Positions 11,393 through 54,265 of a stretch of DNA of 64,000 nt are shown here, piece by piece (positions within the stretch are counted from its first letter, which is position 1; each line of letters opens with the position of its first letter). The stretch spans positions 3,658,001 through 3,722,000 of the forward strand of contig OZ251224.1 of assembly GCA_965240325.2 (NCBI GenBank), read 5' to 3'. The position numbers and the translations under genes are program-made. The notes below the pieces were generated by a model. The model was not told the origin of the DNA, made no database searches, and worked only from the letters and a program-made list of their open reading frames with translations. Source of the stretch: Rebecca billardiae RCC1528 (Eukaryota > Protista > Haptophyta).

Positions 11393-13165
11393 TGGCCCGC
11401 GGTGCAGGGCGGAGCGCGCAGCGTGGAGCCCGCACCAGCGGGCCCGAACCACGTTTCAAAAAGATCTTTGATCAAGAAAAAAGGGACGGGGGGCGATTTT
11501 TAGGGCTGGCGGAGACCGAGTTTCGAGTTTTTGAGATCGCATAGAGAGGTCTATTAGGCCGAAAATAACCGCGCCCAGCTGATTCCCTTAAGTAAAGTGC
11601 GATCTGGACGTCAGCTGGACGTGACATTAGTGTAACGGTTCGTTACGAGCGCGATTTTAAGTATGAGATTGCCGCCAACCGCGCCAACCGATAAAAACGG
11701 CAAGGCAAGGGATCGGCCTCATCGGGAAACTTGATCACATCTAACTGTGAATAGTAAAAAAAAGCAGCGCGACGAACCCGGGCGCGCCGGCCCTTGCGGC
11801 AGCCGCGGTCACGAACTCGCGAAGCTCAAAACAGGGGGCTGCACCCACACGGGCGAGCCCTCCTCCCTCGACCCGGCGACCATCGGTGTGGACGACCGCG
11901 CGGAGCGCGCGCCGCGCGCGCGGAGCGCGCGCGGCCGCGGGCGCCTCCCGCGCGGGCGGCGTACGCACGCCCGCGCGCCCGCCCGCGCGCGCGTCCGCGT
12001 TTGCGGGCGCGCGCGGATCAGCCATCAGGCTTCCGTGTCGGGGCGTTGCGTTCGACATGCGCCATGTCGTGCCATGTCGTCACGGCGTGCGCATGTGCGT
12101 ACTCTCGGTGGGGTGGTGCGCGGGCGGCGGCGCTCTCCTGATTTCTACCCCGCGCCCGTGTCGCTGTGCGTGCGCGCTGCGTCGCGCAGGCACGCAAGTG
12201 CGCGGGAGCCCGATCCGCGTGCTCGCGACCGGACGGCCGGCCGACGGCCGGCATCCGGCCGGATGGAGACAGAGCAGACAATTGACAGGCAGGTACTCGC
12301 GTGGAGGCGCTGGGCGCCGAGCCGGCGAAGCGCGATGCCGAGCTCGACGCGTGCGCGCAGAGGCGCTGGGCGCCGACCTGGCGAAGCGAGACGCCGAGCT
12401 CCACGCGCACGCGGACGCGCTGGGCGGTCGCGCTGCCCTTGTCGACGCCCTGCAGCAGCTCGAGCAGGTGTGGACGGCCCTCGAAGCGACCGTGGGCGAG
12501 CGCGCGCCGCTCAGCCTGCCGCTGGCCGCCGCCATCCTCGAGGCCGACGCGGCGGAGCAGGCGGCGGGCGAGCACGGCGGCGCGAGTGGAGCAGGGCACA
12601 CGTGCGCCGGGCGGCGGGCGCGACATGCCACTCGCTTCGTTCCACCCCGAGCTCCGCTCGGTCTGCGCGTGGCTGCGCAGCGTGGGCGGGCGGCAGTGGC
12701 GCGCGCTCTCGCCATGCCGGCCCGAGGCGCGCCGGCTGAGCGACCAGCGGCCCTTCGTCGAGCGCATGGCGCAGCGCGAGCACCTCAAGCTGAAGCAGGT
12801 GCGCCCGCACGCGCGCACGCGCCGGCCCGGCGCCGCGCGGCGCCTCTCGCCCTCTCGCCCTGCGCGCGCCGCCGCCCCGCTTCCCCGCGCGGCCCGTCCG
12901 CGCCTCTCGCCCTGCGAGCGCGCCGCCCCGCTTCCCCGCCGCGCGGCCCGTCCGCTGCGGTGTCCCATGCCACCCTTGGCCGTGCGCGCCCGCATACTCG
13001 CGCCGAGTCCGAGACTCGGTCTCGGGTCCGACTCTCCCTCTCAGAGTGGCTGAACTGTCTTTCTGACTCGGACTGACTGACTCGTCAGTCTCTGAATTCT
13101 CAACCACTGCGCCGCGGGCCCCCAACTGCGTTGGTTCTACGGAAAAGGACCGCGGAACGCGGTCA
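11393..13165 (+). mobile_element. non-autonomous Helentron/Helitron2-like element, copy E1
   Basis: 5' end TGGCCCGCGGTGCAGGG...GCACCAGCGGGCC (hairpin). Subterminal inverted copy GCGCCGCGGGCC at 13109-13120. 3' hairpin GACCGCG-GAA-CGCGGTC at 13148-13164. Both ends recur in three other copies in the window. Confidence 0.75.
12290..12960 (+). pseudogene. captured coiled-coil gene fragment (frameshifted) inside E1
   Basis: EALGA.LAKRDAEL..., LSLPLAAAILEADAAEQAAGEHGG and QRPFVERMAQREHLKLKQ followed by a GTGCGC intron donor. Homologous to the fragments in E2 and E4. Confidence 0.65.
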
Positions 13166-13471
13166 TATATATATTATTTATTTCTGACGACGAGTGACGC
13201 GCGATGATCATTAAGAAACTTGGTCATTGGCGCAGTACGTCCCGAGTGACCGACGGGTCCGGGTCGCGGCAAGTCAGTTTAACAGCATCAACTTAGCAGT
13301 GATGCCGTGCGGCGTATGCATGCAAGGCGTGCGATCGATATCGACTAAACGGCACCGCGCGACGATCAAATTACTTAATGTTAGGGCCGGGGGCATTTAA
13401 CTTACGCGGTCACTTATTAAAATATATATTATAATACCGTCGGTCAGTCCGTCGTGCAGGACTACAGATTA

Positions 13472-14677
13472 TTAGATGCCATATGTCCGCCGTGATCGAT
13501 GCCGGCGGCGGCAGCGCCAGACAACCCGATTTCTGCCGACGAACGGGAGGCGCGACAGCTGCACCACCCAGCCGCCGTCGTCCGCGTCGAAGCCGCGCCC
13601 GCGGCTTCTGTCAGCAGCAGCAGCTGCTGCTGCATCAGCAGCTGCGCCGGCGGGCGTCTGCTGTGCGACGCTTATTACTCCCAGGGAGTTCGCGCCGTTG
13701 TCACACGGGGTGCAGAGCTGCACAAGGTAGGTGCACAGACCGCTCGTCGACGTCACGCCTTGCCCAGCTCGCAGGCGGCGCTCCGGGAACAGGGAAGGGA
13801 ACACGCAGCACGGCACTGTGGCGAACGGCTTGCCCAGCGCGAGCGCCGCATGCACGATAGGGTCTGTGGCCTGGTCCGGGTGCATGCCGATGATCACGCT
13901 GGCCGCGCGCAGTGCGTTGAGGATCGCGGCGGCCTCATCGTCGCGCGGGCCGCCCTCGGCACCTTCCGCATGCGCCAGCCCCTCGCACGTGCGCAGGGTG
14001 ACGATGCCGCGCACGTGGTGCAGCAAAGGGTGTGGCGCGGCGGCGAGCTGGCGAGCGTCCGGCCCGAGGCTGGCTGGGTCGATGACTGTCGTCGGGATCG
14101 CGTGCTCTCGCACGAGCTGGGCGGCGATGTGGCCCTTGCCACCGCCGACGTCGACCACCCCGCCTCCGGCGCGGAGCTCGCTGGCGCCAAAGGTCTCGAC
14201 CAGCCAGCGCGCAAAGATCTCATGCCGCTCCTCCTTGCCCGCCTTGTGCTCAAAGTCGGCATCGGGGTCCGGCATCGGCTCGGCCGCCACGTCGATGAGC
14301 TCGCGCACGGCGAGGACGCGCACGCCATGCTGGTTCGGCTGCGGCTCGAGCACGCCGATGCATTCCACCGCGCAATTCGCCCATCCCAGGCCGCTGATGC
14401 GCTGCATGCGCGCAAACGCCTTGATGTCTACAGGCTCTCCGCGAAACGTGGTGATCGAGGGTTCGAGCATGATGTCCACGCAGTCACCCACGCAGAGCTC
14501 GGCCGGCATGGCTGCAAGACCCTCCACGATCGCCACGGAGCAGAACATCAGGCGCTTGCCGATGAGCCTAGTCTTGCGCACGTGCACGCGCACGTGGGCG
14601 GACGCCATCGACGACGCATCGGACGAGCGAGACGACGACGCTATTTTCTTGGTTTTCTCGGCCGGGGCCGCCGCCAT
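13472..14677 (-). CDS. SAM-dependent methyltransferase-like protein with a probable N-terminal OB-fold
   Basis: RHEIFARWLVETFG, VVDVGGGKG (motif I), IIGMHPDQATDPIV...KPFATVPCCVFP and LPFVGRNRVV. ATG at 14677. Confidence 0.75.
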   Translation of the reverse strand: MAAAPAEKTKKIASSSRSSDASSMASAHVRVHVRKTRLIGKRLMFCSVAIVEGLAAMPAELCVGDCVDIMLEPSITTFRGEPVDIKAFARMQRISGLGWANCAVECIGVLEPQPNQHGVRVLAVRELIDVAAEPMPDPDADFEHKAGKEERHEIFARWLVETFGASELRAGGGVVDVGGGKGHIAAQLVREHAIPTTVIDPASLGPDARQLAAAPHPLLHHVRGIVTLRTCEGLAHAEGAEGGPRDDEAAAILNALRAASVIIGMHPDQATDPIVHAALALGKPFATVPCCVFPSLFPERRLRAGQGVTSTSGLCTYLVQLCTPCDNGANSLGVISVAQQTPAGAAADAAAAAAADRSRGRGFDADDGGWVVQLSRLPFVGRNRVVWRCRRRHRSRRTYGI

Positions 14678-14779
14678 CGCGATTTCAGCGACGCGCGTTC
14701 GGCCCTTCAGCGGCGGCGCCGATCGAGTCTGGCTGGACCAGCTCCGGGCTCTTGGCGTTGGGCGCTCCAGGGCGCGGCG

Positions 14780-16727: not shown

Positions 16728-17244
16728 AGGTTGACAGCCAGCTGCTCCGCACGCGACCGCGATCTATCTGTCGGGATACGTTCACGGTGCCGTGCGTGCG
16801 GCACGCTGGGAAGCCGGACGGTGACCGGCATTGGGCGCGGGGCGGCAACCGTCTGAAAGTAAGCCGCGTGATCTATATGCGAAGCGCACGGGGCTCCAGC
16901 CACGGTCAGAGACACGGAAGCCCGTGAGTCGACTGAGTCGCGTACGTGAGCGTAACTTCGACTAGTTCGTCCGACACGCCGGGACAGACAGCGGGAGTTG
17001 ACACGGCTCCCGGCCGGATGGGTGGATGGCAGCAGCATTGGCGCGGAATCTAGGCCGCCGGACCGGCCGTCCCCGGCCCGCCGCCGGCCCAGCTGGCCCG
17101 CGTGGGGCCCGGCGGCGCGGCCTCCGAGTGGCGAGTCCGCGGCCGAGTCGCGGCCTCTGCATGTCCATGACGGCTCGGGAGTCGGGGCTGTATACTGCCA
17201 TCACTGTTATTCATGAGGACGCACTGCTGACGCCGTTCCGCCGC

Positions 17245-18084: not shown

Positions 18085-18327
18085 CGTCGCGTGGCTGCCG
18101 GCCTCCCAAGGAAAGCCGTCCACGCCTCGTCGGTGTTTGATCGCCAGTCGCGCGCCAGTGTGCTGCGGCTTGAGGCCACCTGTGAGATCAAGTTGAAAGT
18201 GATCTCGGAAACCGAGAACCAGGCGACGCTGCTTTCCTGTGCTGCCTGCCGGCCGCCGGGCGATTCTCAATTTCTCATCAGCCGAGCGACCGGCATCGCC
18301 CACCTCCGCAGTTGCATTCGCGACAAG

Positions 18328-21138: not shown

Positions 21139-21678
21139 CGATGACAAGGGAAAGCGCATGGCGCCGACCACTTATGACGTATTGCAACTTTCAAATATTT
21201 CTGCTGCATGGCATGGATCATGATGGTCGCGGCGACGCCGCGACATGGACTCTTCGTCGAAGATCGACGGGATCGACGCCGGACGGGCGGACGGAAGCGG
21301 CGGACGCCGGCCCGCCGACGGCGTCGACTGCGGACGGGCCGGCCGGCTGACGCGGCGCGGTCGCGGCCGCCGTCTAGGCGTCTTCGAGTCTCATCATCAC
21401 CGTTCATCTCATCTCATCTGTTGAGTGTTGATGACTGTTGATTATACTACAGACTGACATTATAATAACGACAGTCTGTTGACTGACTGCTGTTCCGTCT
21501 GTTCGCCGATCAGCGACGGTCGTGTCGGTCGTCGGTCCGTCCGCGAGTTCACGACACTGACAGTGACAGTACACTCATGCGACGACAGAGCAGTTATTGC
21601 GCTACTACTGCCTAACTATACTTGCTGCCGATGTCGTGAGTACTCACTGAGTCTTAACTACTCTTAGACTTAACAGTA

Positions 21679-29100: not shown

Positions 29101-29151
<51 letters not shown>
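29101..29151. repeat. poly-C homopolymer (51 nt)
   Basis: Uninterrupted C run. Confidence 0.95.
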
Positions 29152-29153
<2 letters not shown>

Positions 29154-35861: not shown

Positions 35862-36729
35862 CTAGTCGTCGTCAAGGTCCATGTGCTTCTTGTTGTATCT
35901 CACAGCGATGTGCGCGATGCAAAGTCCGAGGAGCATGCTGACGAATGTCCAGTTCGTCTGCGCTGTGCCCGGGAGCAAATGGCCCGTGATGAGTTTCGGG
36001 ATCCAGTTGACTGCAATCAGGACGCCCGAGTTGTAGTACAGGTAGGTCATCATGCTCATGTGCATGCGGATCCACTTGCGCGGACCCTTCACGTACCAGA
36101 TGCCGAGCAGCTGCAAGGCGATCTGGATGAAGCCGATCGTCATCATGAGCACCTTTGTGCCCAGCGGGAGGGTGCTCTCGCCGCCAAGGACGTACGCATA
36201 CCCGGTGAAAACGGAGAGGAAGCCGATGAGCATTGCGAAGCGCCCGACCCACTTGTGGATCGAGCGGTACGACACCCCGTGGTTGGGCGTGTGAAACAGG
36301 TTCCACGCGCATCCAAGGACAAACAGAAAGGCAAACGGGATGTGGACTGCCATGGTCATGGAGTCCGTTTCGATCCGGGGAAATCCCAGCTCGCTGCGTC
36401 GCGCGAGCGCGAGCGAACGGGCGGAGAGTCGCAGGGGCGTGCGCGCCCACTCAGCTGCGCGACATCGGCGCAGTCGCTGCCAGACGCACGCGGAGGGCGC
36501 AGTCGCTGCCAGACGCACGCGGAGGGAGGCACGGTGGTGCACGCGTGAGCGCGTGCGGCGCGCACAAAAGGAAGTAGATGACAAACACTGTCCCACCAAA
36601 CCACCACGGCGTGATGTTGCCCTTGAGGAAGACGACGATGGGATGCTTCCCGGGCGGAGGCGCCGACCCGGCTCCCGAAGGCCTGCCCGAAGGCTTCGCC
36701 ATCTTGAGTGCTGACTCGTCAGCGAGCAT
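35862..36729 (-). CDS. integral membrane protein, DUF2306-like
   Basis: Exons 36729-36566 and 36393-35862 (intron 36394-36565). About 5-6 TM helices with His in AVHIP, SIHKWVGR and RMHMSMM. Confidence 0.65.
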
Positions 36730-37499: not shown

Positions 37500-40400
37500 A
37501 TGAGTGACGCCTCCTTCGTCGTGCCCATCAAAGGCGCGCCCCTTCTTGACGACGGCTCTGGTGAGCTCGGCGGCCAGACCGTCCCGAATGGCGAGCGAAA
37601 GAAGAGCGTCGCGCGCCGCGCGAGCGTCCTGGCCTCGCAGCTCGTCCGGCGCGTGCAGCATGCACCGCCGGGCGAGGATGAGGGCGACGGTGCAAAAGCA
37701 GTGCCTGCGAAGGCCGTGAAGCTCAAGGGCATCCTCAGGACCGGTGAGGGCGGTCGCAGGAAGAAGGACCTGCACGTCGAGTTTCGCACCGTGCTCGCGG
37801 GCGAGGAGGCTCACGTGCAGGACGTCCGCATCAAGCAGGCTCAGGAGGCCGAGGAGCGCGAGCGGCGGGCGAGGCTGCTCAACATCGCCAAGCTCGCGCG
37901 GCTGCCCACGCTGACGATCGAGGAGCTGATGATTCCGCTGCGCCTCGCGTTCCCCGACCTCATCGTGAACAGCCCCATGGCGATGATCCTCGACATCATC
38001 AGCGACTCGTTCGAGCTCTGCTGGATTGTCAAGACGATCCGCGAGCAGCCGACGCTGGAGGAGGTGCGCAAGATGGAGGAGAACGGGAACAAGGCGGGCG
38101 ACGAGAAGTCGAAGATCGAGCTGTACACCGCCGCGCACGCCGTGCGCGACATTGGCACGGTCCTCTCGCTGCACTTCTCGCGCGGCATCTACATCATCTC
38201 GGGCGACGACACGCTGTGGACGCTCGTGCAGGTGGTGCGCACGGTGCGGGTGCGCGAGCTCGTGGCGTACGTGCAGCAGATCAACAACGACCTGACCACG
38301 AACGTCAAGTTCCTCGCCGTGTACAAGTTCTCGCTCGTGCTCATCTCCGTGCCGCACTGGGTGCGCGCGCGCGCGGCCTGCGCGCGCGCGGCCTGCGACG
38401 CGGCACCGCGGCACCGCCCCGGCACCGCGGCGCGCGACACCCTGCGACCTCTTTGACCGAGCCCTGCCCCGCGCGCGTGGCTGTGCGCGTGCGTCTCGCA
38501 GGTGGCGTGCATCTGGTGGGCCCTCGCGGCGCGCTGGGGCGGCGAGGTGCTCGCGCTGCCGTCGTGGCCCGCGCAGGTCCCGCTGCTCACGAGCAACCGG
38601 GACCTCAACGCCGCTCAGATGAGCGACGTCGACAACTACATCATGTCGCTGTACATGGCGTGGATGGGCCTCACGTCGATGGGCTACGGTGCGCGCGGCG
38701 GCGGCCCGGTCGCCACGCGTGCGCGCTGCTGCTCGCCGCGCCGCGGCCGCATGCTCACGCGCGCACCGCCTCGCGCCCGGCATCGCGCGCCCGTCTCCAG
38801 GCACGCTCGTGCTGACGATCCAGCAGGAGGTGATCTTCGCGGCGTTCGTGGCGATGCTGCAGATGGTCTTCTACGCGTTCGTGCTCGGTACCCTCTTCCA
38901 CTACCTCGTGCGCACCGACGAGAACACCGTGCACTACAACGAGCTGATGAAGGCGGTGGACGAGTACGTGAGCCACCGCAAGTTGCCCAAGGAGCTCGCC
39001 GCCAAGATCCGCGCGCACTACGCCTTCCAGCACCGCAAGCAGGCGGCGGGCACGGAGCGCATCTTCGGGCAGATGCCGCTGTCGATGCGCACCGAGGTCG
39101 CCGTCTCGCAGCACAGCCGCCAGATGCACGCCACGTGGGTGTTCTGGGCGTGCACGCCGCAGTTCCTCAGCTACGTCGCGCTCTACCTGCGCGAGCGCTA
39201 CATGATGGTGCGTGCCCGCGCGCGCGCCGCGCGCGCCGTGCGGCTTGCTTCAAGGCGCACCGCGGCCGCGGCCGGCGCGCGCGCGCCGCGTGCTCACCAC
39301 ACCGCCCCGCATCGCCGCGCGCGCGCCCCGCCTCGCGACTGCGCAGCCAAGCGAGACCCTCTTCAAGCGCGGCGACGGCGCGGCCGAGCTCCTCTGGTGC
39401 GTCGGCGGCTCGCTGCACGTCAGCAAGGGCGATCAGCACATCACGACGATCCGCTCCGACCTCGGGCCGGGCCAGATCGTGGGCGAGGTCGCGTTCTTCA
39501 TCGGCATCCAGCAGCCGTACTCGGTCGTCGCCTCCTCCAAGGGCGAGGTGACGCTGATCGTGCTCACCAGCGCCGCCTTCGAAGAGATCATCGGCTCGTA
39601 CCCCGAGCAGACCGACCAGATCACGCAGAACCTGCTGCGCAAGTACGGCCTCGACAAGAACGGCGCCGACCTCACCTCGGGCGGGTTCAACGAGCAGATG
39701 GACGAGGACGAGCAGCGCGAGTACGAGGCGCTGCGCTCGACCATCCGCGCCGCCATCCTCGAGCGCAACGAGGAGCTCTTCGCGCAGATGTCGACGGCGG
39801 TGCACCAGGGCGACGTCGAGACGGTGCGCGCGCTCACGGCGCGCGGCTTCGACCTGGGCGCGGGCTCGTACGACATGCGCACGCCGCTGCACCTCGCCTC
39901 GATGGAGGGCCACCGCACGGTCGTGAAGGTGCTGTGCGAGCTCGGCGCCGAGGTGAACACGGTCGACCGCTTCGGCTCGACGCCCATCAAGAACGCGGTC
40001 GAGGGGAAGCACGGCGCGGTCGCGGACGAGCTCTCGCGCTTTGGCGCTCGGCTCTCGCTTGCGCGCCCGGCGTCGCGGCTGCACGCGGCGGCCAAGACGG
40101 GCGACATGAACACGATGACGATGCTCGTCGCGCACGGCATCAACATCAACTCGGTCAACTACGACGGGCGCACCGCGCTGCACGTCGCCGCCTCCGAGGG
40201 CAACGCGCGCGTCTCCGAGTACCTCATCTCCAACATGGCCGACGTGCACGCGCGCGACCGCTGGGAGCACTCGCCGCTCGACGACGCGATCGACAACGAC
40301 CACCCGCTCGTCGCGCAGATGCTGGTGCGCTCGTCGGCGAAGCCGGACATCAAGACCATGGCCGAGCTGCTGCGCACGTCGGCCGCCGGCGGCGACACCG

Positions 40401-43400
40401 ACCGCCTCAAGTTCCTCCTGTCGATGGGCGTCGACATCGACGCGGCCGACTACGACGATCGGACTGCGCTGCACTACGCGGTGCGCTCGGGCTCGGTCTC
40501 GTCGACGCACCTGCTCGTGTGCGCGCTCGCGGACGTCAACATCGTCGACCGCTGGCTGCGCCCGCCGCTGCTCGACGCGCTCGAGGTGAACCCGAAGATC
40601 GCGTCCGTGCTGCTCCAGGCGGGCGCGCGCGTGCCGGACAGCCACAAGGACGACCCGGAGATCACGGCCAAGGTGCGCGCGGCCGAGGCGTCGGACCTGT
40701 ACGACGTGAACCGCGCGATCAGCGACACGTCCAGGCAGCGCGACAAGCTGAACGAGGCGAAGCTGAGCAAGTCGCGCGAGGTGGAGATGGAGATCGCCGG
40801 GCTCGCCGACGAGTTTGGGGGCCTCACGCGCGCGCAGCGCGGCCTCTTCCGCCAGGTCTCCAAGCACGCCGACATCTGGATCGCCGAGTACGGCGAGGAG
40901 GGCGACTCGGACACCGACTCCGACATCGGCTCGCAGGAGGGGGGCAGCGGGCGGATGGACCCGGAGGACCCGGACAGCGACTCGGACGACACGGACAGCG
41001 ACGACGGCAAGATGGAGGGCTCCACCTCGAAGCGCCAGTCCAAGCACTTCATCAAGCTCGTGCTGCAGCTGCCCAAGGCCGAGGACGGGCTGGTCGAGAT
41101 CCGCAACGCGTTCCGCACCAAGCTCGGGCCCGACATGCGCAAGCACATGCCCGAGCAGCAGCGCCGGCTCGAGGAGGACAAGGCGCTGTACCAGATGCTG
41201 CAGCAGGAGTTTGGCATCCCCGTCGAGAACGCGGACCGCGTCCTCGACGACATCTACGCCGAGCTCAACGTCTTCCTCGGCGACGTCGCGCCCAAGGCGC
41301 CGGTGAAGGGCACGCACGCGACCGCGGCGCACTCGCGCGACGACCCGATGACGGGCGCCGACTTCAGCGCCGCGGACGAGATGGAGGAGCTCGCCGCGGA
41401 GGGCGGCCACGCGTTCGTGGGCACGCGCAAGACGGCGCACAAGGTCGACGACATCAAGCGGAACTCGCTCCGCCGCGGCTCGAACGCGGGCACGTCGCTC
41501 ATCGACCTGTCGATGGCGCGCAGCAACGCCGACTCGTCGTTCAAGCGCAACGGCCTCGCGCACCTGCGCAAGAAGCAGATGACGCACCCGACCTTCGCCG
41601 ACTTCCTCGACTCGGACGAGCCGATCTTCCTCTCCGACCTCGGCCACGTCGTCCTCTTCTGCTCGCGCCGCTTCATCGACACGCTCGCCGAGCGGCACGT
41701 GAAGGCTGCGCGCGAGGCGGGCGTCAAGGACATGCTCGCCACCCCGCCCAAGCGCGACCCGAACGCGCCGCAGCCGCCGCCCATCTTTGAGGAGCGGTCT
41801 GGCTCGGACTTGATCAAGAGCGGAGGGCTGAAGGCGGTCACGCGCGCCGTGCGCGCCAGCTTCAACGGCAGCGAGCAGGGCACGCCGGGGATGTCGCGCT
41901 TCAGGCCGTCGCAGGCCAAGAATGACGGCTCGCCGACCGGCCAAGATCGCATCTCGCCCAAGCGCGGCGCGGCGAGCCCGCCGAGCTGGTCGCCCGACGG
42001 CCAACGGCGCGCCAGCCTCACCTTGGAGGAGGCGGACGGCAAGAACCGGCGGTCCACCGCGTCTTCGGACCAGGATCCGTCGTTCATCAAGCACCTGACG
42101 GTCACGCCGAAGGGCGGCGGCTCCTTCTACGGTGATGGCGCGGCCGACGCGATGCGCTCGGTGGAGAAGGCGCTCTTCATCATCACGAGTCTCTTCCGCG
42201 TCTTTGACCACGCGGGCAAGGGCGTGATCCGGCTGCGCGACGTGAAGCGGCTGCAGGGCGATCTGGGCGAGCTGGGCTCGACGGAGATCAAGTCGCTGCT
42301 GTCGTACCTGATGGCGGCCTCGCGCACCTTCGCGCTTCCCGCCGTCGAGGACGCCGGGCTGATGGTGGGCGCGCCGGGCGCGGCGGAAGACCCCTTCTAC
42401 GGCCGGCGCCGCAGCAGCACGCCCGCCTTCGACCTGGACGGCAGGAAGAGTGGCAAGCGCACGTCGCAGAAGCTGCGCACCTCGCTCATGCTCAGCGCCG
42501 ATGGCATCGTGATGAAGGCGCAGGACCGGCAGCCCGAGGCGCACAAGCCGGCGGCGATGCCGCCTGCCAGCGAGGCGATCGAGCCGCCTCCGGCCGCCGC
42601 GCCCGACGTCGTCGTTTCGCTCTCGGCCAACGTCGCCCCGCCAAACCTCGATGTCGTGGAGGAGGCGGCGCCGGCGGAGGAGACGGACGACGCGCCGCTC
42701 TTCGCCTCGGGCGAGCTCAACCGGAAGCACATCGTCTCGGACGACGCGGCCGACGAGATGTACCTCGGCCGCGGCAACGTGCTCGGCGCGCTCGGCCAGG
42801 ACAAGGTCCAGGCCACGCGGCCAGGCCGCGCGCGCAAGGCGCGCGCAATGACGGAGGTGCAGTTCTTCGTCGGCGTCGCCTCGTGGATCCTCCTCTCGCA
42901 CTCGGAAGACGCGGACAGGGACGAGGGGCTCACCGACTTCGAGGGCATCGCCGCGGCGGAGGGCGTCTTCATCCCCAAGCTCAAGACCGGCCCCGCCGCG
43001 GCCGAGAACAAGCAGACGGCGGCGGCGGCTGCCAAGGCCGCCAAGGCGGAGGCGGCGGCCAAGGCGGCGCACGAGGAGGCGATCGTGCGCGAGCTCGACG
43101 CCGCGCTCAACTCGGTGGCGGCGTGCCTGCTCCTCGCGGACAACCTGCAGCAGCGCGTCGACACCGGCCGCATCAACCTCGCCGAGCCGACGGACACGGA
43201 GGTGCTGCTCAAGGCGGTGCAGCACTCGGTCGTGATCCCGCACGGCACCAACGCGGGGCACATCGAGCAGTGGGTCGAGGTGCACCTGGACATGCGGCTG
43301 GGCACGATCGGGACGCACCACGGGCACCACCCCGAGCGCGGCTCCGAGACCGGGCACCACGCCCACGCCCACGCCCACGCCCACGCCGCCGGCGAGGAGG

Positions 43401-46400
43401 GCGGCTCGGAGGACGGGCTGCGCGAGGACAAGCTGATTGCCGCCGAGCTCGAGGAGGGCATTGACACGACGCTGCTCACGTGGCAGACGCTGCTCGGCCG
43501 GCTGCGCGAGCGCGCGGCGACGCTGCGCAACGAGGCGGGCGACAACCTGAACGCGCAGCAAGCGAAGAAGGGCCCGGTCGCAGCCGTCCTCGAGGCCTTC
43601 GGCGTCGGCTCCTCGGCCGTCGTGCCCGTCGACGACGCCAACGCTGAGGGCGGGCACGAGGGCGAGGGCGAGGGCGGCGCGGTGGTGTGGCCGTGGTACA
43701 TCATGAGCGTGCGCTCGCAGTGGTACTCGTACATACACACGCTCTTCCTCGTGCTGGTGATGTGGGACGCGCTCTTCGTGCCGATGCAGCTCGCCTACTT
43801 CGACGAGATCTCGCGCATGCCGTGGGTGCTCGGCCTCAACCTCACGTTTGACGTGCTGTACGCGATGCGGATCGTGCTCCTCTTCCACACGACCTACATC
43901 AACGAGAAGTCGGTCGAGGTGTTCCGCCCGCGCGAGATTCGGCGGCAGTACCTCGCGGGCGACTTCGCGCTCGACCTCTTCGCGTGCTGGCCGCACGACC
44001 AGGTGCTCTGGGCGCTCGGCGTGCCGACCATGATCCGCTTCGGGCTGCGGCTGCTGCGGATGATCAACTGCCGGTACGCGTTTGCGTCGTTTGGCCGCTG
44101 GAAGGCCAAGCTGAGCGACTCCGACTTCAGCTCGGGGCTGATCAAGAACCTGACGCCGCTCTTTATCACGATCCACTACATGGCGTGCGTGTGGAACGTC
44201 CTCGGCTTCTCCGACGTGGGGCGCACCTTCGGCATCCGCACGTGGGCGGACGTGTACCTGCACTCGCGCCAGGACGTCGGCGGTGAGATCACCATCTACT
44301 CGACCGCCGAGGAGAAGCTCCTCGACCAGTACCTCACGGCGATCTTCTTCGTGCTCTCGCTCATCTCGGCGCTGGGCGTGGCGCAGCTGCCGGCCAACAT
44401 GGCCGAGTTCTTCGCCTTCGTCGTGCTGGCGATCCTCAACATGACGATCTACGCGTACTGCGTCGGCGGGATCTCCGGCCTCGTGATGAAGCAGGACGAC
44501 GAGATCGTCGGCAAGCGCGCGCACCTCGAGCTCGTGCACGCGTACGTGCGGCACGTGCACGTGCCGCCCGAGCTGAAGGACCGCATGACCAAGTTCTTCG
44601 TGCAGCGGCTGCAGCACACCTCGCTCTCGTCCGTCGACTCGGAGCAGATCTACTCGGGGCTGCCGATGCCGCTGCAGATGGAGGTGGCGGCGCACACGAA
44701 CCGCGCGCTCGTGGGCAACTGCGCGCTGCTGCGCGGCTGCTCGACCGGCTTCCTCGACCGGCTCTCCTCGTCGCTGCGCGAGCGCGAGCTCGAGGCGGAG
44801 ACGGTGGTCTTCCGCTCGGGCGAGGCGTGCAAGGAGCTCATGATCGTCGCGTCCGGCACCATCGAGACGCTGGAGGAGGGCGAGGGCGCGGACGACTCGG
44901 TGGAGACGCTGGGCCCGGGCGACACGGTCGCCGAGGTCGCCTTCGTCTTCCGCATCCGCCACTTCAAGACCGCGCGCGTCGGGCGGAACGAGAAGGCCTT
45001 CGCGTTCACGCTCGCGACCGAGCTGTGCGCGCCGCGCCGGCCGCCCCGCGTTCACGCCCGCGCGGCGCACGCACGGCCGCGCGCCCGCGGCGTTGCTGAC
45101 CGGCCACCGTCCCACCGCCGCACGCGCGCGCCCCTCGCTCACGCGCCGCAGGTACAAGGAGCTGCTCAAGGCGTTCCCGACGCAGGAGGACATCATCATG
45201 GACAACGCAGTGCGGCAGTACGAAGGTGTGTGCCACGGCCGTGCCCGCGCGGCGCATCGGCTGCACACGCCGCCCGGCGCCGCCCTCCGCCCCCGCTGAC
45301 CCTCGCGCTCGCGGCCGCCCGCCCTCGCCTCGTCGCGCGCGCTGGCGCAGGGATGGCCACTGCGCGCTCGGGGAAATCGGGCAAGTCCAAGGCATCGAGC
45401 GGCGGCGGGTCCTCGTCGGCTCTGTCGGCGGGCGACGGCAACTCCTCCGTCGGCGGCAGGTCCGACCTGTCCAACGTGCAGGACGTGAAGACGCTGCACA
45501 AGGTGGGCGCCGAGCCGAGCGCCTGCGCGCGGCGGCCGCGCGCACGGCCGCGCGGCTCCCGCCTCTGCGCATCCCGTGCGCTGCGCTCACGCGGCACGCG
45601 CGCCGTCTGCTTTCCCCGCGCAGATCCTCGCCGAGGCGAAGCGCAAGCGCGAGGAGCTGATGCACGCGCGGCTGTGCACGGCGTGCGCCAAGGGCGACTA
45701 CGACAAGGTGCGCCGCATGCTGACGGGCCGCTCGATCGACATCGACCACGGCGACTTTGAAGGGCGGCGGGCGCTGCACCTCGCGGCGTGCGGCGGCGAC
45801 AAGCGCGTGATCGAGCTACTGCTCGCGTCCCGCGCGGACGTGAACATCGAGGACAGCCTGGGCAACACGCCGCTCGACGACGCGCTCCACTCGGACAACG
45901 CCGACGCCGCGGCGCAGCTCGCGAGCCACGGCGGGCGGCACGGCTCGCGCAACGTTGCCGACGAGGTGTGCACGGCGGGCAGCCACGCCGAGGGCAAGCA
46001 AGAGCTGCAGCGGCTCTGCCAGTACGGCGGCAACGTGAACGCGGCCACGCACGAGCAGCGCACGGCGCTGCACATCGCCGCGTCCGAGGGCCGCGTGGAC
46101 AACCTCCGGATGCTGCTCGAGAACAAGGCGGACGTGAACGCGCGCGACCGGCGCGGCTCGACACCGCTGCAGGACGCGCTGCTCGGCCGTCAGGACGAGG
46201 CGTGCGAGCTGCTGCTGCAGCACGGCGCGATGCTCGGCGAGTTCGACACGGCGCTGCACATGAACACGGCGGCCGCGGAGAATGACACGCTGCACCTCGC
46301 GCGGCTCATCAAGTTCCGCTGCTCGATCAACACGCAGGACGAGCTCGGCCGCGCGCCGGTCCACCTCGCCGCGTCCAGGCGCCGGATCAACGCGCTCAAC

Positions 46401-47161
46401 TTTCTGCTCGACACGGCCGACATCGACGTCAACATCGAGGACAAGTTCGGGAACACGGCGTACGACGACGCGATGCGCGACTCGGCGAAGGAGCAGAAGG
46501 TCCTCCGCGCCCTGCTCGAGACGCGCGGCGCGCGGCCCGGCAGCCACGTCCACAGCGCGTCGATGGCGCAGTCGGACATGGAGGCCGAGAGGCAGACGGT
46601 GGCGGCGCGCGTCGTCTCGCAGCGCGACCTCACGCTCACCGAGGCGCGCACGATCCGGCAGTGGGTGAAGGAGGAGCGCGAGGCGGTGGCGGCGTTCAAC
46701 GAGCAGCTCAAGGTCGCCATCGCGCTGCAGCGCGAGCGCGGCGCCGTGCTCGCCGACGAGCTGCCCGAGCTGTGGGAGCAGGTGTACGCGTACGCGGAGG
46801 GCTACTTTGACTGGCGCGAGGAGGCGCTGCAGACGGTCGCGCCGACCATCCGGCGCTGGTTCGAGCAGAACCGCGACTTTGCCCTTGTCGCGCTGCAGAA
46901 GCTGCAGCAGAAGGTGCGTGCGCGCGCCGCCTCTGCGCTCCGTCGGCCCGGCGCGCGCTGCCGTCCAGCTCGCGCCCGCGCTCCGCGCGCCCTCGCGCCG
47001 TGTGATGGCTCACACCACGAATGCGCGCCGCTCGCCCCGCGGACGTGCGCCTGCGTGTGCAGTTCCACGACCTCGCCATCCTCGGCGAGACGGATGCCAA
47101 GCCGGTCGAGCGCTTGTACGAGGTCACGTTCCGGAAGCCTGTGAAGGTGGATGGGAGGTGA
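37500..47161 (+). CDS. two-repeat cyclic-nucleotide-binding-domain K+ channel-like protein with ankyrin repeats, 2x(6TM-CNBD-ANK), ~2915 aa
   Basis: Exons 37500-38360, 38502-38688, 38801-39207, 39347-45024, 45152-45225, 45351-45502, 45624-46913, 47063-47161 stay in frame. Pore 1 LTSMGYG; CNBDs (LGPGQIVGEVAFF, LGPGDTVAEVAFV); ankyrin repeats (YDGRTALHVAA). The last exon may splice further at AG|GTGAGT (47158). Confidence 0.85.
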
Positions 47162-47466
47162 GTGCACCCAAGGATGCGCTGGGACGACGGACCAACACAT
47201 TTTCGTCGTCCGTTGTGAGGCGCGTCACGCGTGAGGCCCGCACTGTGCGCGGGTGCGCCAACTGCCAACTGGCAACTTGTTACTGCTGGCGTTTATGACA
47301 GCAAGGTTTCGTTGTCTCTGTGTTGTCACAATAATAAGGGCGGGATTACGTATCCCCTCCACTTGTGAGTCGATGTATTGTTGCTGTCGCGATAGTGATT
47401 ACTCAGATCGATGGCTGATGATTTAAAAAGTCAATCATCATTATAATCATGTCATCTCATCAATAA

Positions 47467-49782
47467 TGGCCCGCGGTGCAGGGCGGAGCGCGCAGCGTGG
47501 AGCCCGCACCAGCGGGCCCGAATGTTCAACGTTTCAAAAAGATCTTTGATCAAGAAAAAAGGGACGGGGGACGATTTTCAGGGCTGGAGGAGACCGAGTT
47601 TCGAATTTTGAGACTCCCTTACAGGTGCATTAGCGTCGAAAAAGGTCGCGCCCACGGCAAGTTCATATTGGAGTGACGCCCGTCCAAAAAACTTCACGCC
47701 CTTTAGGATCCATAACGTAACGAACCGTTACAAGCGATTTTTTCCAGCCAATGAGATTGCCGCAAGGTCATCAAGGAGCGATGACGACGTATCTAGATAG
47801 CCAGCCGGCACCGCGGGCCATTCGTTCATTACTTGTGTGCTGGACTGCGCTTGTTATTAATTCATTACTTGTGTGCTGGACTGCCGCTAGCTTTTGCGGG
47901 TTCTGATCATCAATCACCCAGGGCCCGGTCTGGTCATAAATGAGCCGCCCGCCGTTTATGACGACCCATTCATGTACATGTATGAACAATGGGTCATTAG
48001 ACCGCGTCGTATCTTAAAAAAACCGCTTCACGTTGCACCGCGTCGTATCAATGCTCGTAAATGAAATTCTATTCTACCGCTTCACGTAGTAACCCTGAGA
48101 TGATCATAGATTATTGAAGATGCTCCCGTCAAGTCGTCGCGGCCCCGTCACCGACGCAAAACAACAGAGGTGGGCCCGATCGCACGTGGGTGGGGGGCGA
48201 TGGCAAGCAGCACCTCGACCGGCGACGCCGACCAGGACTACGTTCGCCGCGTATTGAACGCGCTGCTCGACTCGAGGACGGTGACGCGGGTGAACAACAC
48301 CACGTTCCAGAGCACCGCTGCCGCCATCTCCGTCGCCAGGCACAAGCAGACCATCCCCGGCGCCGCGAGCGAGTACGGCGTACGTCAACAAAAGCGATCA
48401 AGCAGCTCCTTGGCCAGGTCCGCAAGGTGCTGGCGGCGGAGGGCGCACTCGGCAGCGGTGGCGCTGCGCGGTTGATCACCGACTTTCGTTCGTGCCCCGC
48501 AGGCGTTCGTCACTCGAGGAGCAGCGCGCAAGGGCGAGCCGAGTCCGGAGCACGCGAGCTCGTCGCTCGCCGCCCGGAGCAGAGCGCGCCGCTGCGAGCG
48601 AGCGGGCGCGGCAGAGCTGATGAGCCGGATGCGCCCGGAGCTCGCGCGGCTGAAGGGCGAGCTCGAGCACGCGAGCTCGCGCCTCGACGCCGAGCGCGAG
48701 CTCCTCCTCAACTCGGTCGACGGCGGCGCGGAGGTGCAGCAGCGTGAGGACGAGCAGGAGCATCAGTGAAACGCGCGCCGGTTCCGGGTCGCGCAGCGGT
48801 GCCCAGCTGCCTGCCACGCGAGCGGCGGCCACGTGGCGCGAGGAGCTGCGTGGGGAAATCGCCGCGCGCGTCGACGCGGCGATCACCGGGCTGCAGGCCT
48901 CGGCAATCGACGCGGTGCGCACCCTCGCCGCCAGCCGCGACGACTCCGCCGTCGAGCTGCAGCAGCTGCGCGCGCAGATGCCAGAAGTGCCGATGGGCGG
49001 CGGCGTATCAGCAGGCTGACGTGCACGAGCACGTGACACGCGGAGGCGCTAGGCGCCAAGCTGGCGAAGTGCGGCGCCGAGCTCGACGAGCTGAGCGACG
49101 CGGCAACGGACGCGCTGGGCGCCCGCGCCGCCATCGTCGCGGCGCCCTCCAGCAGCTCGAGCAGCTGTGGATAGTTGGCCGTCGAGGCGACCGCGGGTGT
49201 GACTCACAGTGTGAGTGAGCCGGCGCGCGGCTCAGCCTGCCGCTGGCAGCCGCCGTCTTCGAGGCCGACGCGGCGGAGGAGGCGGCGGGCGAGCACGGCG
49301 GCGCGGTGGAGCAGGCGCGCACGCGCGGCGGCAGGCGCGACGCGCCGCTCGCCTCGTTCCACCGCCCCGAGCTCCGCTCGGTCGGTCTCGGTGCGAGGCT
49401 GCGCAGCCGGCAGGCCGGGGCCAGCAGTGGCGCGCGCTCTCGCTCTGCCGGCACGAGCGACCAGCGGCCCGTCGTCGAGCGCATGGCGCAGGGCGAGTAC
49501 CTCAAGCAGGTGCGCCCGCTCGCGCGCACGCGCCGGCTCGCGCCGCGCGAGCGCCTCTCGTCCTGCCTGCGCGCGCGCGCCGGCCGCTAGTCCCCGCGGC
49601 GGCCCGCGGACCCGCGGCGACAGTCCTCGGCCCGCCGGCCCGGTGGGCGGCAGTGACTGAGTTGGCGGTGGCAGCTCAGGCGAACTGTTACACATGTCAG
49701 ACTGACACAGCAGCCGACGGAGGGTGCGCCGCGGGCCCCGAACTACGTTCGTTCTACGGAAAAAGACCGCGGAACGCGGTCA
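47467..49782 (+). mobile_element. non-autonomous Helentron/Helitron2-like element, copy E2
   Basis: Same 5' hairpin end at 47467, subterminal inverted motif at 49726-49737, 3' hairpin at 49765-49781. An extra internal inverted motif lies at 47808-47819. Confidence 0.72.
48199..49620 (+). pseudogene. captured gene fragments (frameshifted coiled-coil gene) inside E2
   Basis: MASSTSTGDADQDYVRRVLNALLD..., MSRMRPELARLKGELEHASSRLDAERELLLNSVDGG, EELRGEIAARVDAAITGLQ and QRPVVERMAQGEYLKQ followed by an intron donor. Multiple frameshifts. Confidence 0.65.
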
Positions 49783-50086
49783 TAATTATCATCAACGAAT
49801 ATAAATAATTTACTCGGATCGTTCATCATCGCGTCGTCTGATATGACTGACGATGCTGCGTCCGGCGGTGGCCGTTTCGTGCACGGCATCACGCAATATC
49901 ATCACCTCCGACCTCGGCGGCATCGCCCTCGGTGTTGCAGCCTGCGCCCCGGTGCTGAGTGCTGCGCGCACTGTGCACCGTCAATCAATAACGCCGTGAC
50001 GCCACTCGGACTCGGTCTCGGCCTCGCCGCCAGCGTGAGCGTCACGCGCTGTCCGTCGCAGCGCTGAGTGAAACTGAAAGTCGCAT

Positions 50087-50095
50087 AGAGAGAGA

Positions 50096-50133
<38 letters not shown>

Positions 50134-50200
50134 AGAGAGTAGAGAGAGAGAGAGAGGGAGAGAGAGAGTCTGCTGAGAGACTCATCACTAGAGAGAGAGA
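50087..50200. repeat. imperfect (GA)n microsatellite
   Basis: Long gagaga tracts with small interruptions. Confidence 0.9.
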
Positions 50201-50228
50201 TTACTGTATATATAGATCGAGAGCATTA

Positions 50229-51528
50229 TGGCCCGCGGTGCAGGGCGGAGCGCGCAGCGTGGAGCCCGCACCAGCGGGCCCGAACCACGTTTCAAAAAGA
50301 TCTTTGATCATATCAGCAAGAAAAAAGGGACGGGGGGCGGCGGAAAAAAAGGGACGGGGGGCGATTTTTAGGGCTGGCGGAGACCGAGTTTCGAGTTTTT
50401 GAGATCGCATTGAGAGGTCTATCAGGCCAAAAAAAACCGCGCCCAGCTGATTCCCTTAAGTAAAGTGCGATATATCTGGACGTCAGCTGGACGTGACATT
50501 AGTGTAACGGTTCGTTACGAGCGAATCGTACTCGTCTTCCCGGATCGCGTGACGTCCGGACTGGGCCACATCCGGATCGTCGGAGGTGACGTGCCCCGGC
50601 ACGATGGGCGATGGCGGATATGCGGGACGGCGCCTGCACGTGCCTCCGGACCCGCCTCCCGCTTGCTGCTCACGCAGTCAGCTGCGACCGTGGCGCATGA
50701 TCGCAGAAGCAGTGCCGGCAGTACGGCCTGCATCAGCTAGTGCCGCGCCGTCGTGGCGCGCGCGGTACGGTTGCGCGTTTGCAGCGCTCGCCGGTCGGCG
50801 ACGGCACGCGCGTGCGGCTCAGGTGTGTCAAATGCGGTCTCGTCGGCGCGCTTTCGCCTGCCACCTCGTGCACCCGTGCCGCCAGTTTCATCGTCTTCAT
50901 GAGGACTGCTGCTGCTGTCGCCATCCGCTCTCCATCACCCCGAGTCGCCGGTCGCGCGGCGCGCGCGGTAGGCACTAGGCAGGGCGTACGGTCACTCACC
51001 CGTGCAACGGGTCAAGTGGCCAGAGTACGTCTGGTCGTTGGCTGGCACGGGCCGCAGCGCTAAAGCACCCTGCTGTCACACCCGACTCCTTCAGTACTCC
51101 GAGCTCCGCTGCACGACTCACTCGGCACGATCGCGGACGGGTCGGATCCGAGCTGATCAGCCAGAGTTGGACACAGTTTGGCAGCTACGAGTAGTAATTC
51201 CGATGCCGATGGCACGATCGCGGACGGGTCGGATCCGAGCTGATCAGCCAGTTGGACATTTGGCAGCTAGTTGTCAGACGGACGTCCGATTTGACGACCG
51301 GTGCCGGGTGCGGTCTCAGGTCCGCTGCTGTGATTGTGTGAATAAGTGTGAATGAGTCTCGCGGTCGCGCAGGCAGGGCGACGGTCGGACTAATATAGCT
51401 TCAGTCATCTCAGAACCGACTTCAACTGGCGAACTGCCACTACGGCGGAGAGCCGCGATTGCACGGCCACCGCGGGCCCCCAACTGCGTTGATTCTATGC
51501 AGAAAAGGACCGCGTCAGAACGCGGTCA
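50229..51528 (+). mobile_element. non-autonomous Helentron/Helitron2-like element, copy E3 (different cargo)
   Basis: The 5' ~290 bp is nearly identical to E1. Subterminal motif at 51467-51478; 3' hairpin GACCGCGT-CAGA-ACGCGGTC at 51508-51527. Confidence 0.75.
51124..51270. repeat. direct duplication (period ~87 bp) within E3
   Basis: ggcacgatcgcggacgggtcggatccgagctgatcagccag at 51124 and 51211. Confidence 0.85.
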
Positions 51529-51709
51529 TTAGCAGTAGTTAGAGACAGACGGAGAGACGAGATCGAGAGAGTTACTCTACTGCTGTCTGATATGACCGCG
51601 TTCCGCGGTCCTTCCGTAGAACCAACGCAGTTAGAGGCCCGCGGTGCACCCTCCGTCGGCCGTCGGCTGTCACTGTCAGTCTGACATGTGTAACAGTTCG
51701 CCTGAGGAC

Positions 51710-52840
51710 TGTCGCCGCGCGGGCCGCGCGCGGGGAAGCGGCCGCTGGGGCGGCGCGCGCGCGCAGGGCGAGAGGCGCCGCGCGGCGCGGGCCGGCGCGT
51801 GCGCGCGTGCGGGCGCACCTGCTTGAGGTGCTCGCGCTGCGCCATGCGCTCGACGACGGGCCGCTGGTCGCTCAGCCGGCGCGCCTCGTGCCGGCAGAGC
51901 GAGAGCGCGCGCCACTCGGCTGCCCCGGCCTGCCGCTGCGCAGCCGCGCACCGAGACCGAGCGAGCGGAGCTCGGGGTGGAACGAGGCGAGCGGCGCGTC
52001 GCGCCTGCCGCGGCGCGTGCGCGCCTGCTCCACCGCGCCGCCGTGCTCGCCCGCCGCCTCCTCCGCCGCGTCGGCGGCCTCGAAGACGGCGGCGGCCAGC
52101 CAACGGCAGGCTCGGAGCCTGTGCGCGCTCCTGAACCGGCGCCGATCGCCTCGACGGCCGTCTACTCCGCACAGCTGGCTGCTCGAGCTGCTGCACGGGG
52201 CGTCGCGACGAGGGCGCCGCGCGCGCCCAGCGCGTCCGTCGCCGCGTCGCGCAGCGCGTCGCGCTCGGCGTCGCGCTTCGCCAGCTCGGCGCACAGCGCC
52301 TCCGCGCGCACGTGCTGGCATGCACGGCCTGTCTGTCAGTGTCTGTGTGCCTGTGACGCCGCCCATCTGCGCGCGCAGCTCGGCTGCAGCTCGGCTGCAG
52401 CTCGACGGCGGACTCGTCGCGGCTGGCGGCGAGGGTGCGCAACGCGTCGACGGCCGAGGCCTGCAGCCCGGTGATCGCCGCGTCGACGCGCGCGGCGCAT
52501 TCCCAGCGCAGCTCCTCGCGCTACGTGGCCGCCGCTTGCGTGCAGCAGTGTCTTGCGAGCGTTCGGGACTGGCTGGCTGCTCGTCCTCACGCTGCTGCAC
52601 CTCAGCGCCGCCGTCGACCGAGTTGAGGAGGAGCTCGCGCTCGGCGTCGAGGAGCGAGCTCGCGTGCTCGAGCTCGCCCTTCAGCTGCGCGAACTCCGGG
52701 CGCATCCGGCTCATCTCCGCTGCGTGCTCGGCGCGCTCACTCATCCTCGAAGCGTCCGAGCGACAAGCTCGTGAGCGTGCTCCGGACTCGGCTCGCCCTT
52801 GCGCGCTCCTCCTCGAGCGACGAACACGCCCGCGGGCAGG
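51710..52840 (-). pseudogene. captured coiled-coil gene fragment inside E4
   Basis: MSRMRPEFAQLKGELEHASSLLDAERELLLNSVDGGAEVQQREDEQ and CRHEARRLSDQRPVVERMAQREHLKQ followed by an intron donor. Homologous to the E1 and E2 cargo. Confidence 0.65.
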
Positions 52841-53426
52841 CTGTTGCCCGCCGCCTCCGCCGCGATCTCGCCGCCCCCGCCGCCGCGATCTCGTCGCGCA
52901 TGCTTTGCAGCGGGGCGCTGTGGGCGCGCCGTCGGCACGGCCTGGCGACGGACCGGACCGAGCGAGACGCGCGCGACGCCTCGGGGAGAGCCGGAGCGGA
53001 GCGCGAGGGCGAGAGCAGAGCGCGAGGGGGAGACCAGCGGCCGGCCGGCTCCCGCCACCGCGCGCGCACCGCGGCGTACGCGGCGCCGACACGCACGTCC
53101 CCGGTCAGGGCGCCGCAGCGACGAAGCGAACGCGAACGAGCGAGCGAGCAGCTCGAGAGTCGAGGGCCGTCCGTGCTCGGTCGAATAAGTGAGCGTAGGG
53201 CGCGCGCCTGGCGGCTCCCAGTATCCAACTTATTGCGAATAGGTAGCAAAACTTGATCACTTCCAAGTGCCCGTGTATGGCCTATGTTTCCAGCACCAAG
53301 TGATGCATCGGTAAATAACAGCGCGCCGCGCGCGCACGCAGTACGCCGACATGCAGTAGTTGAGGAGGACCCTGACCATGCACATCAACATGCACTTTCA
53401 AAAGGTTGCGCTTAGGCCCGGTTTGT

Positions 53427-53640
53427 AGGCGGGTAACTTGTTACGTTTTAACAAGCCGCCATAGGCGCCATTCAAAGAATCTCGTTTAACATTAGTGCAC
53501 AGGCGGTTCATCCATCGAGGCAGGCGGGTAATGTGGTTGAACAAGCGCTATTCAAAAGAATCTCTCTTAATATTATAGGGCGGTTCATCCATCGAGACAG
53601 GCGGGTAGGTGTTTAAACAAAGCGCTATTCAGAAGCATCT
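53427..53640. repeat. degenerate tandem repeat (~3 units, 77-95 bp) inside E4
   Basis: aggcgggta...aacaag..attca recurs at 53427, 53522 and 53599; ggcggttcatccatcgag occurs twice. Confidence 0.7.
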
Positions 53641-54265
53641 GGCCTCATAGCTGTTTTCGACCCAAAACAATCAAACGTCGCTCGGCAAACTCGTACTCCA
53701 GCATACAAGAATGACAAAAATACTCACTTGTTTCACCCCCGGGGTATCTGATCCCACGTCCGTCCATCGACTTATGCGGAATGGCGTGGGCGCGCTTATT
53801 TCGTCAAGCGCGTAGTTGCTAATGCAGAGCACTATGGGCCAACGTACCCCTCGAAAAAGCGAAAACTCACCCTCCAACACCCCTCAAAATCGTCCCCCGT
53901 CCCCTTTTCTTTGATCAAAAGATCTTTTTGACAACGTAGTGAGGGCCCCCGGCGGGGCTCCACGCTAAGCGCTCCGCCCTACACCGCGGGCCATGAACCG
54001 TCGTCATCATGGCCCGATCGATGAGCATGCGCGAGTGAATAAAGTTATAAAGCAGCTAGCTGATGACGTTTCTCAATCAGCTACCGGTCAGTAGTCGGGT
54101 TACCAGTGGTCGGATCGGTCATCGGACAAGTCGAGTGCCTGAGCGGTGCCGCGCACGCCGTGATGCCTCAGGGCTCATCACACTGCTCTCAGCAGCAGGC
54201 GCAGCATGTCGTCAAGACTCATCAAATGACGCGCGATGATGATGACGCGACTCTGATTATTCGCG

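Follow-up and report, generated by a model that had tools for sequence, protein, structure and literature searches.

The 64,000-nt stretch of contig OZ251224.1 of Rebecca billardiae RCC1528 analysed here (positions 3,658,001 to 3,722,000, forward strand; hereafter the window, within which all end and copy counts were made) is about 69% GC and carries long uninterrupted genes separated by AT-richer spacers. Its genes encode a HAT-repeat splicing-factor-like protein, an ACBP/BSD protein, ion-channel/ankyrin proteins, an XPG nuclease, an ABCF protein and a Der GTPase, and the AT-richer intergenic spacers between genes hold four copies, E1 to E4, of one interspersed family of transposons. E1 (GGCCCG...GCGGTC; 11394..13164, + strand; 5′ flank TAAT, 3′ flank AT) sits between the HAT-repeat gene and the ACBP/BSD gene. 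E2 extends over 47468..49781 (+) and E3 over 50230..51527 (+), while E4 (51594..53992) lies on the − strand, tail to tail with E3 with 64 bp between them. E1 to E4 are a real and well-bounded transposon family, non-autonomous and of the Helitron2 or Helitron-like-element-2 (HLE2) architectural type.

Three approaches, namely a blastn search of the window with the four elements as queries, a comparison of the window with itself and nhmmer profiles of the ends, agreed on exactly four left ends (11394 +, 47468 +, 50230 + and 53992 −), and the family has as many right ends (13164 +, 49781 +, 51527 + and 51594 −). The nhmmer E values were 1e-30 to 1e-48 for the 5′ ends and 1e-18 to 1e-21 for the 3′ ends. 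Every left end was paired with a right end 1.3–2.4 kb further on, collinear and on the same strand, and neither blastn nor the nhmmer profiles detected a solo end in the window. The original prediction of four elements with common ends is confirmed, and within the window these ends occur only in pairs. The left ends have 140–295 nt in common at 74–87% identity, and the right ends about 58 nt at 80–93%. The 12-mer GGCCCGCGGTGY, allowing at most one mismatch, occurs 13 times against 4.5 expected, a number (at least 13) reached in none of 100 shuffles; eight of these matches mark the ends of elements, a ninth is an additional copy in the interior of E2 and the other four are background. A 24-nt motif of the 3′ end was found three times against an expectation of zero.

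When the four copies were aligned together with their flanks, similarity began exactly at GGCCCG and ended exactly after GCGGTC, stopping sharply on both sides in all of them. The left end is preceded by T-N-A-T and the right end is followed by AT in four of four copies. The elements had been placed correctly, save that their limits each included one base of the flanking AT. It had further been suggested that the 3′ end might be extended by AGCAGTAG, which follows both E3 and E4. This candidate was rejected as part of the element: the spacer between E3 and E4 (51528–51593) holds an inverted 8-mer, AGCAGTAG at 51531–51538 and CTACTGCT at 51578–51585, and both 3′ flanks seem to continue with the same sequence because of it, at offsets that differ (+2 and +8).

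At the left tip, the 12-nt motif GGCCCGCGGTG(C/T) stands at position 1 (2–3 counting flank bases) in all four copies and, as anticipated, is the first arm of a hairpin of 51 nt, pairing with GCACC-A-GCGGGCC 40 nt downstream. Folded as single-stranded DNA, this hairpin reaches −23 kcal/mol in E1 to E3, with z about −3.1 to −3.5 (E1, 11394..11444 on the + strand, −23.2 kcal/mol, z −3.1, with the 5′ asymmetric terminal inverted repeat, ATIR, at 11394–11405; E2, 47468–47518 on the + strand). The E4 hairpin (53943–53992, − strand; 5′ ATIR 53981–53992) has diverged, having seven substitutions plus a single deletion; folding is retained there, with the register shifted and the partners changed (−17.4 kcal/mol, z −1.7). 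Measured from the left tip, E1 and E2 match at 51 of 51 hairpin positions and at 41 of the next 42, then at 73%, beyond which nothing is alignable. The conserved left region also carries two short and perfect palindromes, AAAGATCTTT and TTGATCAA (11455–11480 in E1 and the equivalent place in E2 to E4), followed by an A-run and GGGACGGGGG, which are kept in all four copies. In addition, the sequence directly after the hairpin bears a faint likeness, in direct orientation, to the right repeat and first right-end stem-loop (GCGGGCC, AAC-NNC-GTT). This likeness is internal and barely above shuffles (z about 3, and in E4 alone), and is no more than a lead.

At the right end, the inverted 12-mer stops 44 nt short of the last C of the element, bearing out the earlier estimate of about 45 bp, and shows one mismatch per copy that is either G-T-compatible or terminal. 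One or two bases beyond it follows a stem-loop, CCAAC-TGC-GTTGG, which the original prediction had missed; its second pair is changed on both sides in E2 (C-G to G-C) and is a T-G wobble in E4, and its outer pair is lost in E3. The element then closes with the predicted terminal hairpin GACCGCG-GAA-CGCGGTC, whose stem is invariant across copies and whose exact sequence is present in three of them, the E3 version having a 3-nt insertion in the loop. In E1 this module occupies 13109..13164 on the + strand (3′ ATIR 13109–13120, stem-loop 13122–13134, terminal hairpin 13148–13164). The corresponding features of E2 (+) are the 3′ ATIR at 49726–49737, the stem-loop CGAAC-TAC-GTTCG at 49739–49751, with compensatory C>G and G>C changes relative to E1, and the terminal hairpin at 49765–49781. 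Those of E3 (+) lie at 51467–51478, 51480–51492 and 51508–51527, the last including the loop insertion, and those of E4 (−) at 51636–51647, 51622–51634 (with the G-T wobble) and 51594–51610. The 3′ module is conserved, and the 100 nt upstream of it are unrelated in most copy pairs. Conservation graded in this way from the tips would be expected if the ends are cis-acting sites and if most of the divergence arose between master copies rather than after insertion.

The interiors of the elements vary from copy to copy. None of ten open reading frames (ORFs) in the elements contained a Pfam family above threshold, and no pair of ends encloses anything of transposase size; there is no recognisable protein in any copy, and all four are therefore non-autonomous, as had been proposed. 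Scans of the elements for Rfam families and tRNAs were empty, so that they are not SINE-like (short interspersed element). Next to the right end, E1, E2 and E4 share an interior block, which extends over 1.3 kb at 79% identity between E2 and E4 and over 0.6 kb at 76–80% in E1. In E2 this coding-like cargo (48200..49515, + strand) begins with an ATG at 48200 and contains stops and frameshifts, and its 3′ part is shared with E4 (51720–52836) and E1 (12336–12896). Its GC content at third codon positions reaches 0.9–0.98, resembling that of real genes of the window, with several switches of reading frame, and an intron-like GTACGT...CAG is present at 48382–48502. The copies of the cargo differ by indels of 1, 2, 8 and 13–16 nt and contain stop codons. 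On these features, the cargo of E1, E2 and E4 derives from coding sequence that is now broken in all copies. The in-frame piece at 49219–49587 had no homologue at E ≤ 0.001 when 1.84 billion representatives were scanned in full with HMMER, and a word-indexed protein search with the 406-aa ORF of E4 gave no match, its selection of candidates probably being swamped by low-complexity words.

E3 is built differently, since over the 260 nt at its 5′ end it matches E1 at about 97% identity, save for a 36-nt duplication, and from 50524 it switches abruptly to unrelated non-coding DNA with no codon periodicity. An E1-like left end joined to other, non-coding DNA is chimerism of the kind that Helitron-type elements generate. 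The description of the family as gene-capturing is thus upheld to the extent that one decayed coding-like cargo is carried by E1, E2 and E4; no parent gene or homologue was found for it, E3 is non-coding, and there was at most one event. It is plausible that the cargo was captured from a host gene, which would then be a single event inherited by the three copies. Central tandem repeats, proposed as a feature of the family, turned out to be specific to each copy, with units of 56 nt and 52 nt in E1, of 87 nt in E3 and of about 80 nt in E4 (53465–53640, with a start-to-start offset of 80 nt), and a duplicated unit of about 33 nt in E2 (47828–47893, TTCATTACTTGTGTGCTGGACTGC core). E2 also contains an extra exact inverted copy of AT plus the 12-mer, ATGGCCCGCGGTGC, at 47806..47819 on the − strand, 340 nt from its 5′ end. 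This copy has no further similarity to either element end and is followed on the + strand by the duplicated unit of about 33 nt; it is possibly what is left of an earlier right end, or else a fragment nested in E2.

The ends of the family agree feature by feature with published definitions, as the original prediction of a Helitron2 or HINE-like architecture implied. Helitron2 elements have been defined by an ATIR of 8–15 nt, with its 5′ copy 0–2 nt from the end within a 5′ hairpin and its 3′ copy subterminal, upstream of a hairpin (PMC3627910). HINE/DINE-1 elements have subterminal inverted repeats (subTIRs) of 12–15 nt, located 2–4 nt from the 5′ end and 38–60 bp from the 3′ end, and a 3′ palindrome (PMC4067079), and HLE2 elements in general possess repeats of 12–16 nt with a stem-loop after the right one (PMC11417382). 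In the present family, a repeat of 12 nt, within the range of 8–16 nt, lies within 0–4 nt of the 5′ end in four of four copies, the 5′ hairpin includes this repeat in the manner described by Bao and Jurka (in E4 with altered partners), and the 3′ repeat is subterminal, in the range of 20–60 nt inside, and is followed by two stem-loops. The shared core with a microsatellite or central tandem repeats that characterises DINE-1/HINE is absent. Nor do the elements resemble canonical Helitron1, with its 5′-TC, 3′-CTRR, single hairpin 10–12 nt from the 3′ end and target between A and T, as they start with (T)GGCCCG, end with GCGGTC(A), have hairpins at both ends and possess an ATIR.

Given this architecture, it is reasonable to suggest, with a probability of roughly 60%, that E1 to E4 are four non-autonomous copies of one HLE2 (Helitron2/Helentron-type) family. 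The assignment to HLE2 and mobilisation by an HUH enzyme are both read from the architecture of the ends, which would fit the following scheme. A Rep(HUH, Y2)-helicase (RepHel) supplied by an autonomous relative elsewhere in the genome would nick a single strand, first at the left junction and then at the right end, with start and stop marked by the hairpins and by pairing of the ATIRs. The excised strand would be circularised and copied, and would then be pasted in one orientation beside a short T/A-rich target, with no real target duplication.

Several points weigh against an HLE2 origin. Neither the window as a whole nor the interval enclosed by any pair of ends contains a RepHel gene. The terminal hairpin is flush with the 3′ end (0–2 nt), as compared with 8–35 nt inside in described HINEs, and the ends are without the T-runs and the 5′-T or TC that many HLE2 families typically show, if the flanking T is left out of account. 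The covariation support is thin, coming from only four copies of which three have identical left hairpins. An empty site was not found in two Logan contigs of the same organism, and insertion may have duplicated the AT.

Among described systems, FoHeli1 and FoHeli2 of Fusarium oxysporum, which are of the Helitron2 type, are the closest analogue. They share with E1 to E4 an asymmetric terminal inverted repeat of 12 bp, the 3′ copy of which lies tens of bp inside the end, as well as terminal hairpins on both sides, a TNAT 5′ flank, already described for them, and non-autonomous derivatives. No target duplication is reported for them, and their joined ends are consistent with a circular intermediate (PMC5148889). 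Unlike them, our family starts with (T)GGCCCG, ends with GCGGTC(AT) and has GC-rich hairpins, the left one of much greater length (51 nt) and the right one closing the element without any tail. Autonomous copies and circular junctions further set the FoHeli elements of a fungal host apart from E1 to E4, which reside in an alga. The Helitron2 elements of Chlamydomonas and other hosts (Bao and Jurka 2013; PMC3627910) are similar in having an ATIR 0–2 nt from the 5′ end within a hairpin, a subterminal 3′ ATIR followed by a hairpin, algal hosts and cargo. They differ in the distance of the 3′ ATIR (20–30 nt versus 44–46 nt in our family) and in their target after TTTT with a 5′ base preference for T, and CRe-1, 2 and 3 among them carry Fanzor genes and show variable target duplications, neither of which was seen in E1 to E4 (PMC3627910). 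The HINE/DINE-1 elements, which are non-autonomous Helentrons, likewise have subTIRs of 12–13 nt, a 3′ subTIR 38–60 bp from the end, a 3′ stem-loop, in DINE-1 a 5′ inverted repeat nested in the subTIR, and no coding capacity (PMC4067079). In contrast to E1 to E4, in which tandem repeats vary by copy, DINE-1 has a conserved core with a microsatellite and central repeats, and HINEs have palindromes 8–35 nt from the end, T-run boundaries in a TT target and animal hosts (PMC4067079).

The target site deserves separate consideration. HLE2 elements insert without duplicating their target, as a rule between T and T and in some cases after TTTT or TNAT. AT is the sole flank identity common to both sides in all four copies, and a T is also invariant four bases before the left end; the junction tetranucleotides are TAAT, TAAT, TTAT and TCAT on the left and TCAT in all four cases on the right. 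These can be read in four ways. An element GGCCCG...GGTCA between T and T, the usual HLE2 rule, is equally compatible with the junctions; an element GGCCCG...GGTCAT inserted after TNAT is compatible as well, and would give T-N-A-T at eight of eight junctions and one cleavage rule for donor ends and target; an element TGGCCCG...GGTCA between A and T is also compatible; and a 2-bp AT target duplication is possible. We infer that cleavage after T-N-A-T is the simplest rule covering all eight junctions. The claim of an AT rather than a TT flank is not established, as a T stands before the 5′ end and another after the terminal A on the 3′ side, so that insertion between T and T fits equally. The flank of E1 (11357–11393; 13165–13180) contains a local tandem duplication, in which CCACGTCGTTAAATATATATACATA and CCACGTCGTTAAT precede E1 and ATATATATATT follows it. 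The interrupted second unit resembles the first, too loosely to fix the insertion point, and the duplicated flank costs one substitution under one target model and one indel under the other.

The hairpins at both ends, together with a T-N-A-T that precedes the left end and also closes the right end of every copy, could also be produced by another single-strand (HUH) transposon, mobilised by a one-tyrosine Rep of an IS200/IS605-like, Replitron-like or undescribed kind that recognises two end hairpins and cuts 3′ of a tetranucleotide. Tetranucleotides at the left flank and the right end are known as cleavage sites in IS608-type elements, and the T-N-A-T of E1 to E4 is similar. Bacterial IS200/IS605 elements (Y1 HUH) likewise have asymmetric ends with hairpins; they insert in a strand- and orientation-specific manner, with no target duplication, next to a short target that resembles the right-end cleavage site. 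They are prokaryotic, however, encode TnpA, have subterminal hairpins that are alike at both ends and do without a 5′-terminal and 3′-subterminal inverted repeat, so that the link to them goes no further than the logic of the ends. The known occurrence of Replitrons, in pelagophytes, other stramenopiles and probably haptophytes (PMC10288648), would also suit such an origin. On the other hand, the 5′-terminal/3′-subterminal inverted repeat is a hallmark of HLE2 and is undescribed for IS200/IS605 or Replitrons, the short direct repeats at or near the termini that define Replitrons are absent except for the flanking AT, and no such Rep is encoded in the window. We consider this origin unlikely. 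A more specific version, which we regard as slightly less likely still, is that the family is independent of RepHel and forms, in a haptophyte-like alga, a lineage of its own among single-strand transposons with hairpin ends, with an enzyme cutting 3′ of T-N-A-T at the left flank, the right end and the target. If this were true, the head-to-tail junction …CGCGGTC-AT-GGCCCGCG… would form an imperfect palindrome with the nick site in its middle, like the Rep origins of viruses and plasmids.

The AT on both sides of all four copies could alternatively be the 2-bp duplication left by a cut-and-paste DDE element, similar to a miniature inverted-repeat transposable element, with a weak terminal inverted repeat G(G/A)CC(C)GCG. 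The inverted last bases GACCGCGT match the first bases GGCCCGCG at six of eight positions with one gap, and the exact inverted 14-mer at 47806–47819 includes the AT. Such an origin is improbable, as the good repeat lies 44 nt internal at the 3′ side and the 44-nt tail beyond it is conserved and moves with the element in all copies. The ends are also strongly asymmetric (similarity of up to 295 nt at the left versus 58 nt at the right), and the T at −4 of every junction is unexplained by a 2-bp duplication. To our knowledge, no DDE superfamily makes a specific AT duplication with such ends. Local duplication of units that are not mobile, or a small gene family whose flanking regions are conserved on both sides, to which the location of three of the four copies within 6.5 kb and the gene-like interior common to three copies might point, is very improbable, as E1 lies 34 kb off in an unrelated context, E4 is inverted, the flanks are unrelated right up to identical boundaries, the same ends in E3 enclose unrelated non-coding DNA and the gene-like interior is broken in all copies.

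Searches beyond the window concerned both the ends and the host. An exact scan with a 24-nt left-end motif gave no match in JGI metagenomes, IMG/VR or GTDB genomes, and a degenerate 28-nt right-end motif that fits four of four copies gave none in JGI metagenomes or IMG/VR. A full-text literature search with the terminal sequences returned unrelated primers only, and none of 17 predicted ORF products near or inside the elements was on record among Logan proteins. Proteins of the window were matched at 100% only in the Logan assemblies ERR14847148 and ERR14847149; the Der GTPase (61658–63313), for instance, is 100% identical only to a protein in the assembly of ERR14847149, its best named relative being that of the haptophyte Diacronema lutheri at 51%. 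One Logan contig, L001, agrees with the window at all but 1 of 2641 bases. Another, L002 (2678 bp, run ERR14847148), matches 56644–53967 at 100%, which verifies the presence of E4, and ends at the apex of the E4 left hairpin, 26 nt into the element (53967–53992). In an assembly with k=31, this stop could reflect TCAT plus an E4-type left end in another context elsewhere in the genome, that is, a further copy or a head-to-tail junction, or it could be a drop of coverage at the GC-rich hairpin.

The family is probably uncatalogued because the host genome appears new. HLE2 being the favoured assignment, E1 to E4 are a new family within a known kind of element, for which an AT target, a high copy number and repeated gene capture are not established.

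Other features of the window lie outside the elements. Within 39212–47144, a very long ORF of 2182 aa contains cyclic-nucleotide-binding, ankyrin and ion-transport domains and is followed, with an overlap, by an ankyrin ORF in another frame (45576–47144); the two may belong to a single gene that is split by an intron or a frameshift. One intergenic spacer contains 51 consecutive C (29101–29151), a (GA)n microsatellite of about 40 units lies between E2 and E3 (50087–50168), and at 36467–36526 a 29-nt unit is duplicated perfectly in tandem (2.1 copies, 100% match).

In annotating this genome, E1 to E4 should be masked as transposons, and the broken gene-like cargo within them should be kept out of the gene calls. 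Helitron-like elements in haptophytes are barely documented in the literature searched, and the family provides clean, well-bounded ends of the Helitron2 type from an alga that is rich in GC and poor in introns, with a haptophyte as its nearest named relative. With their unusually legible end signals, comprising a 51-nt GC-rich hairpin, two 3′ stem-loops and one junction tetranucleotide, these elements are a handy substrate for understanding how an HLE2 Rep-helicase chooses its start, stop and target.

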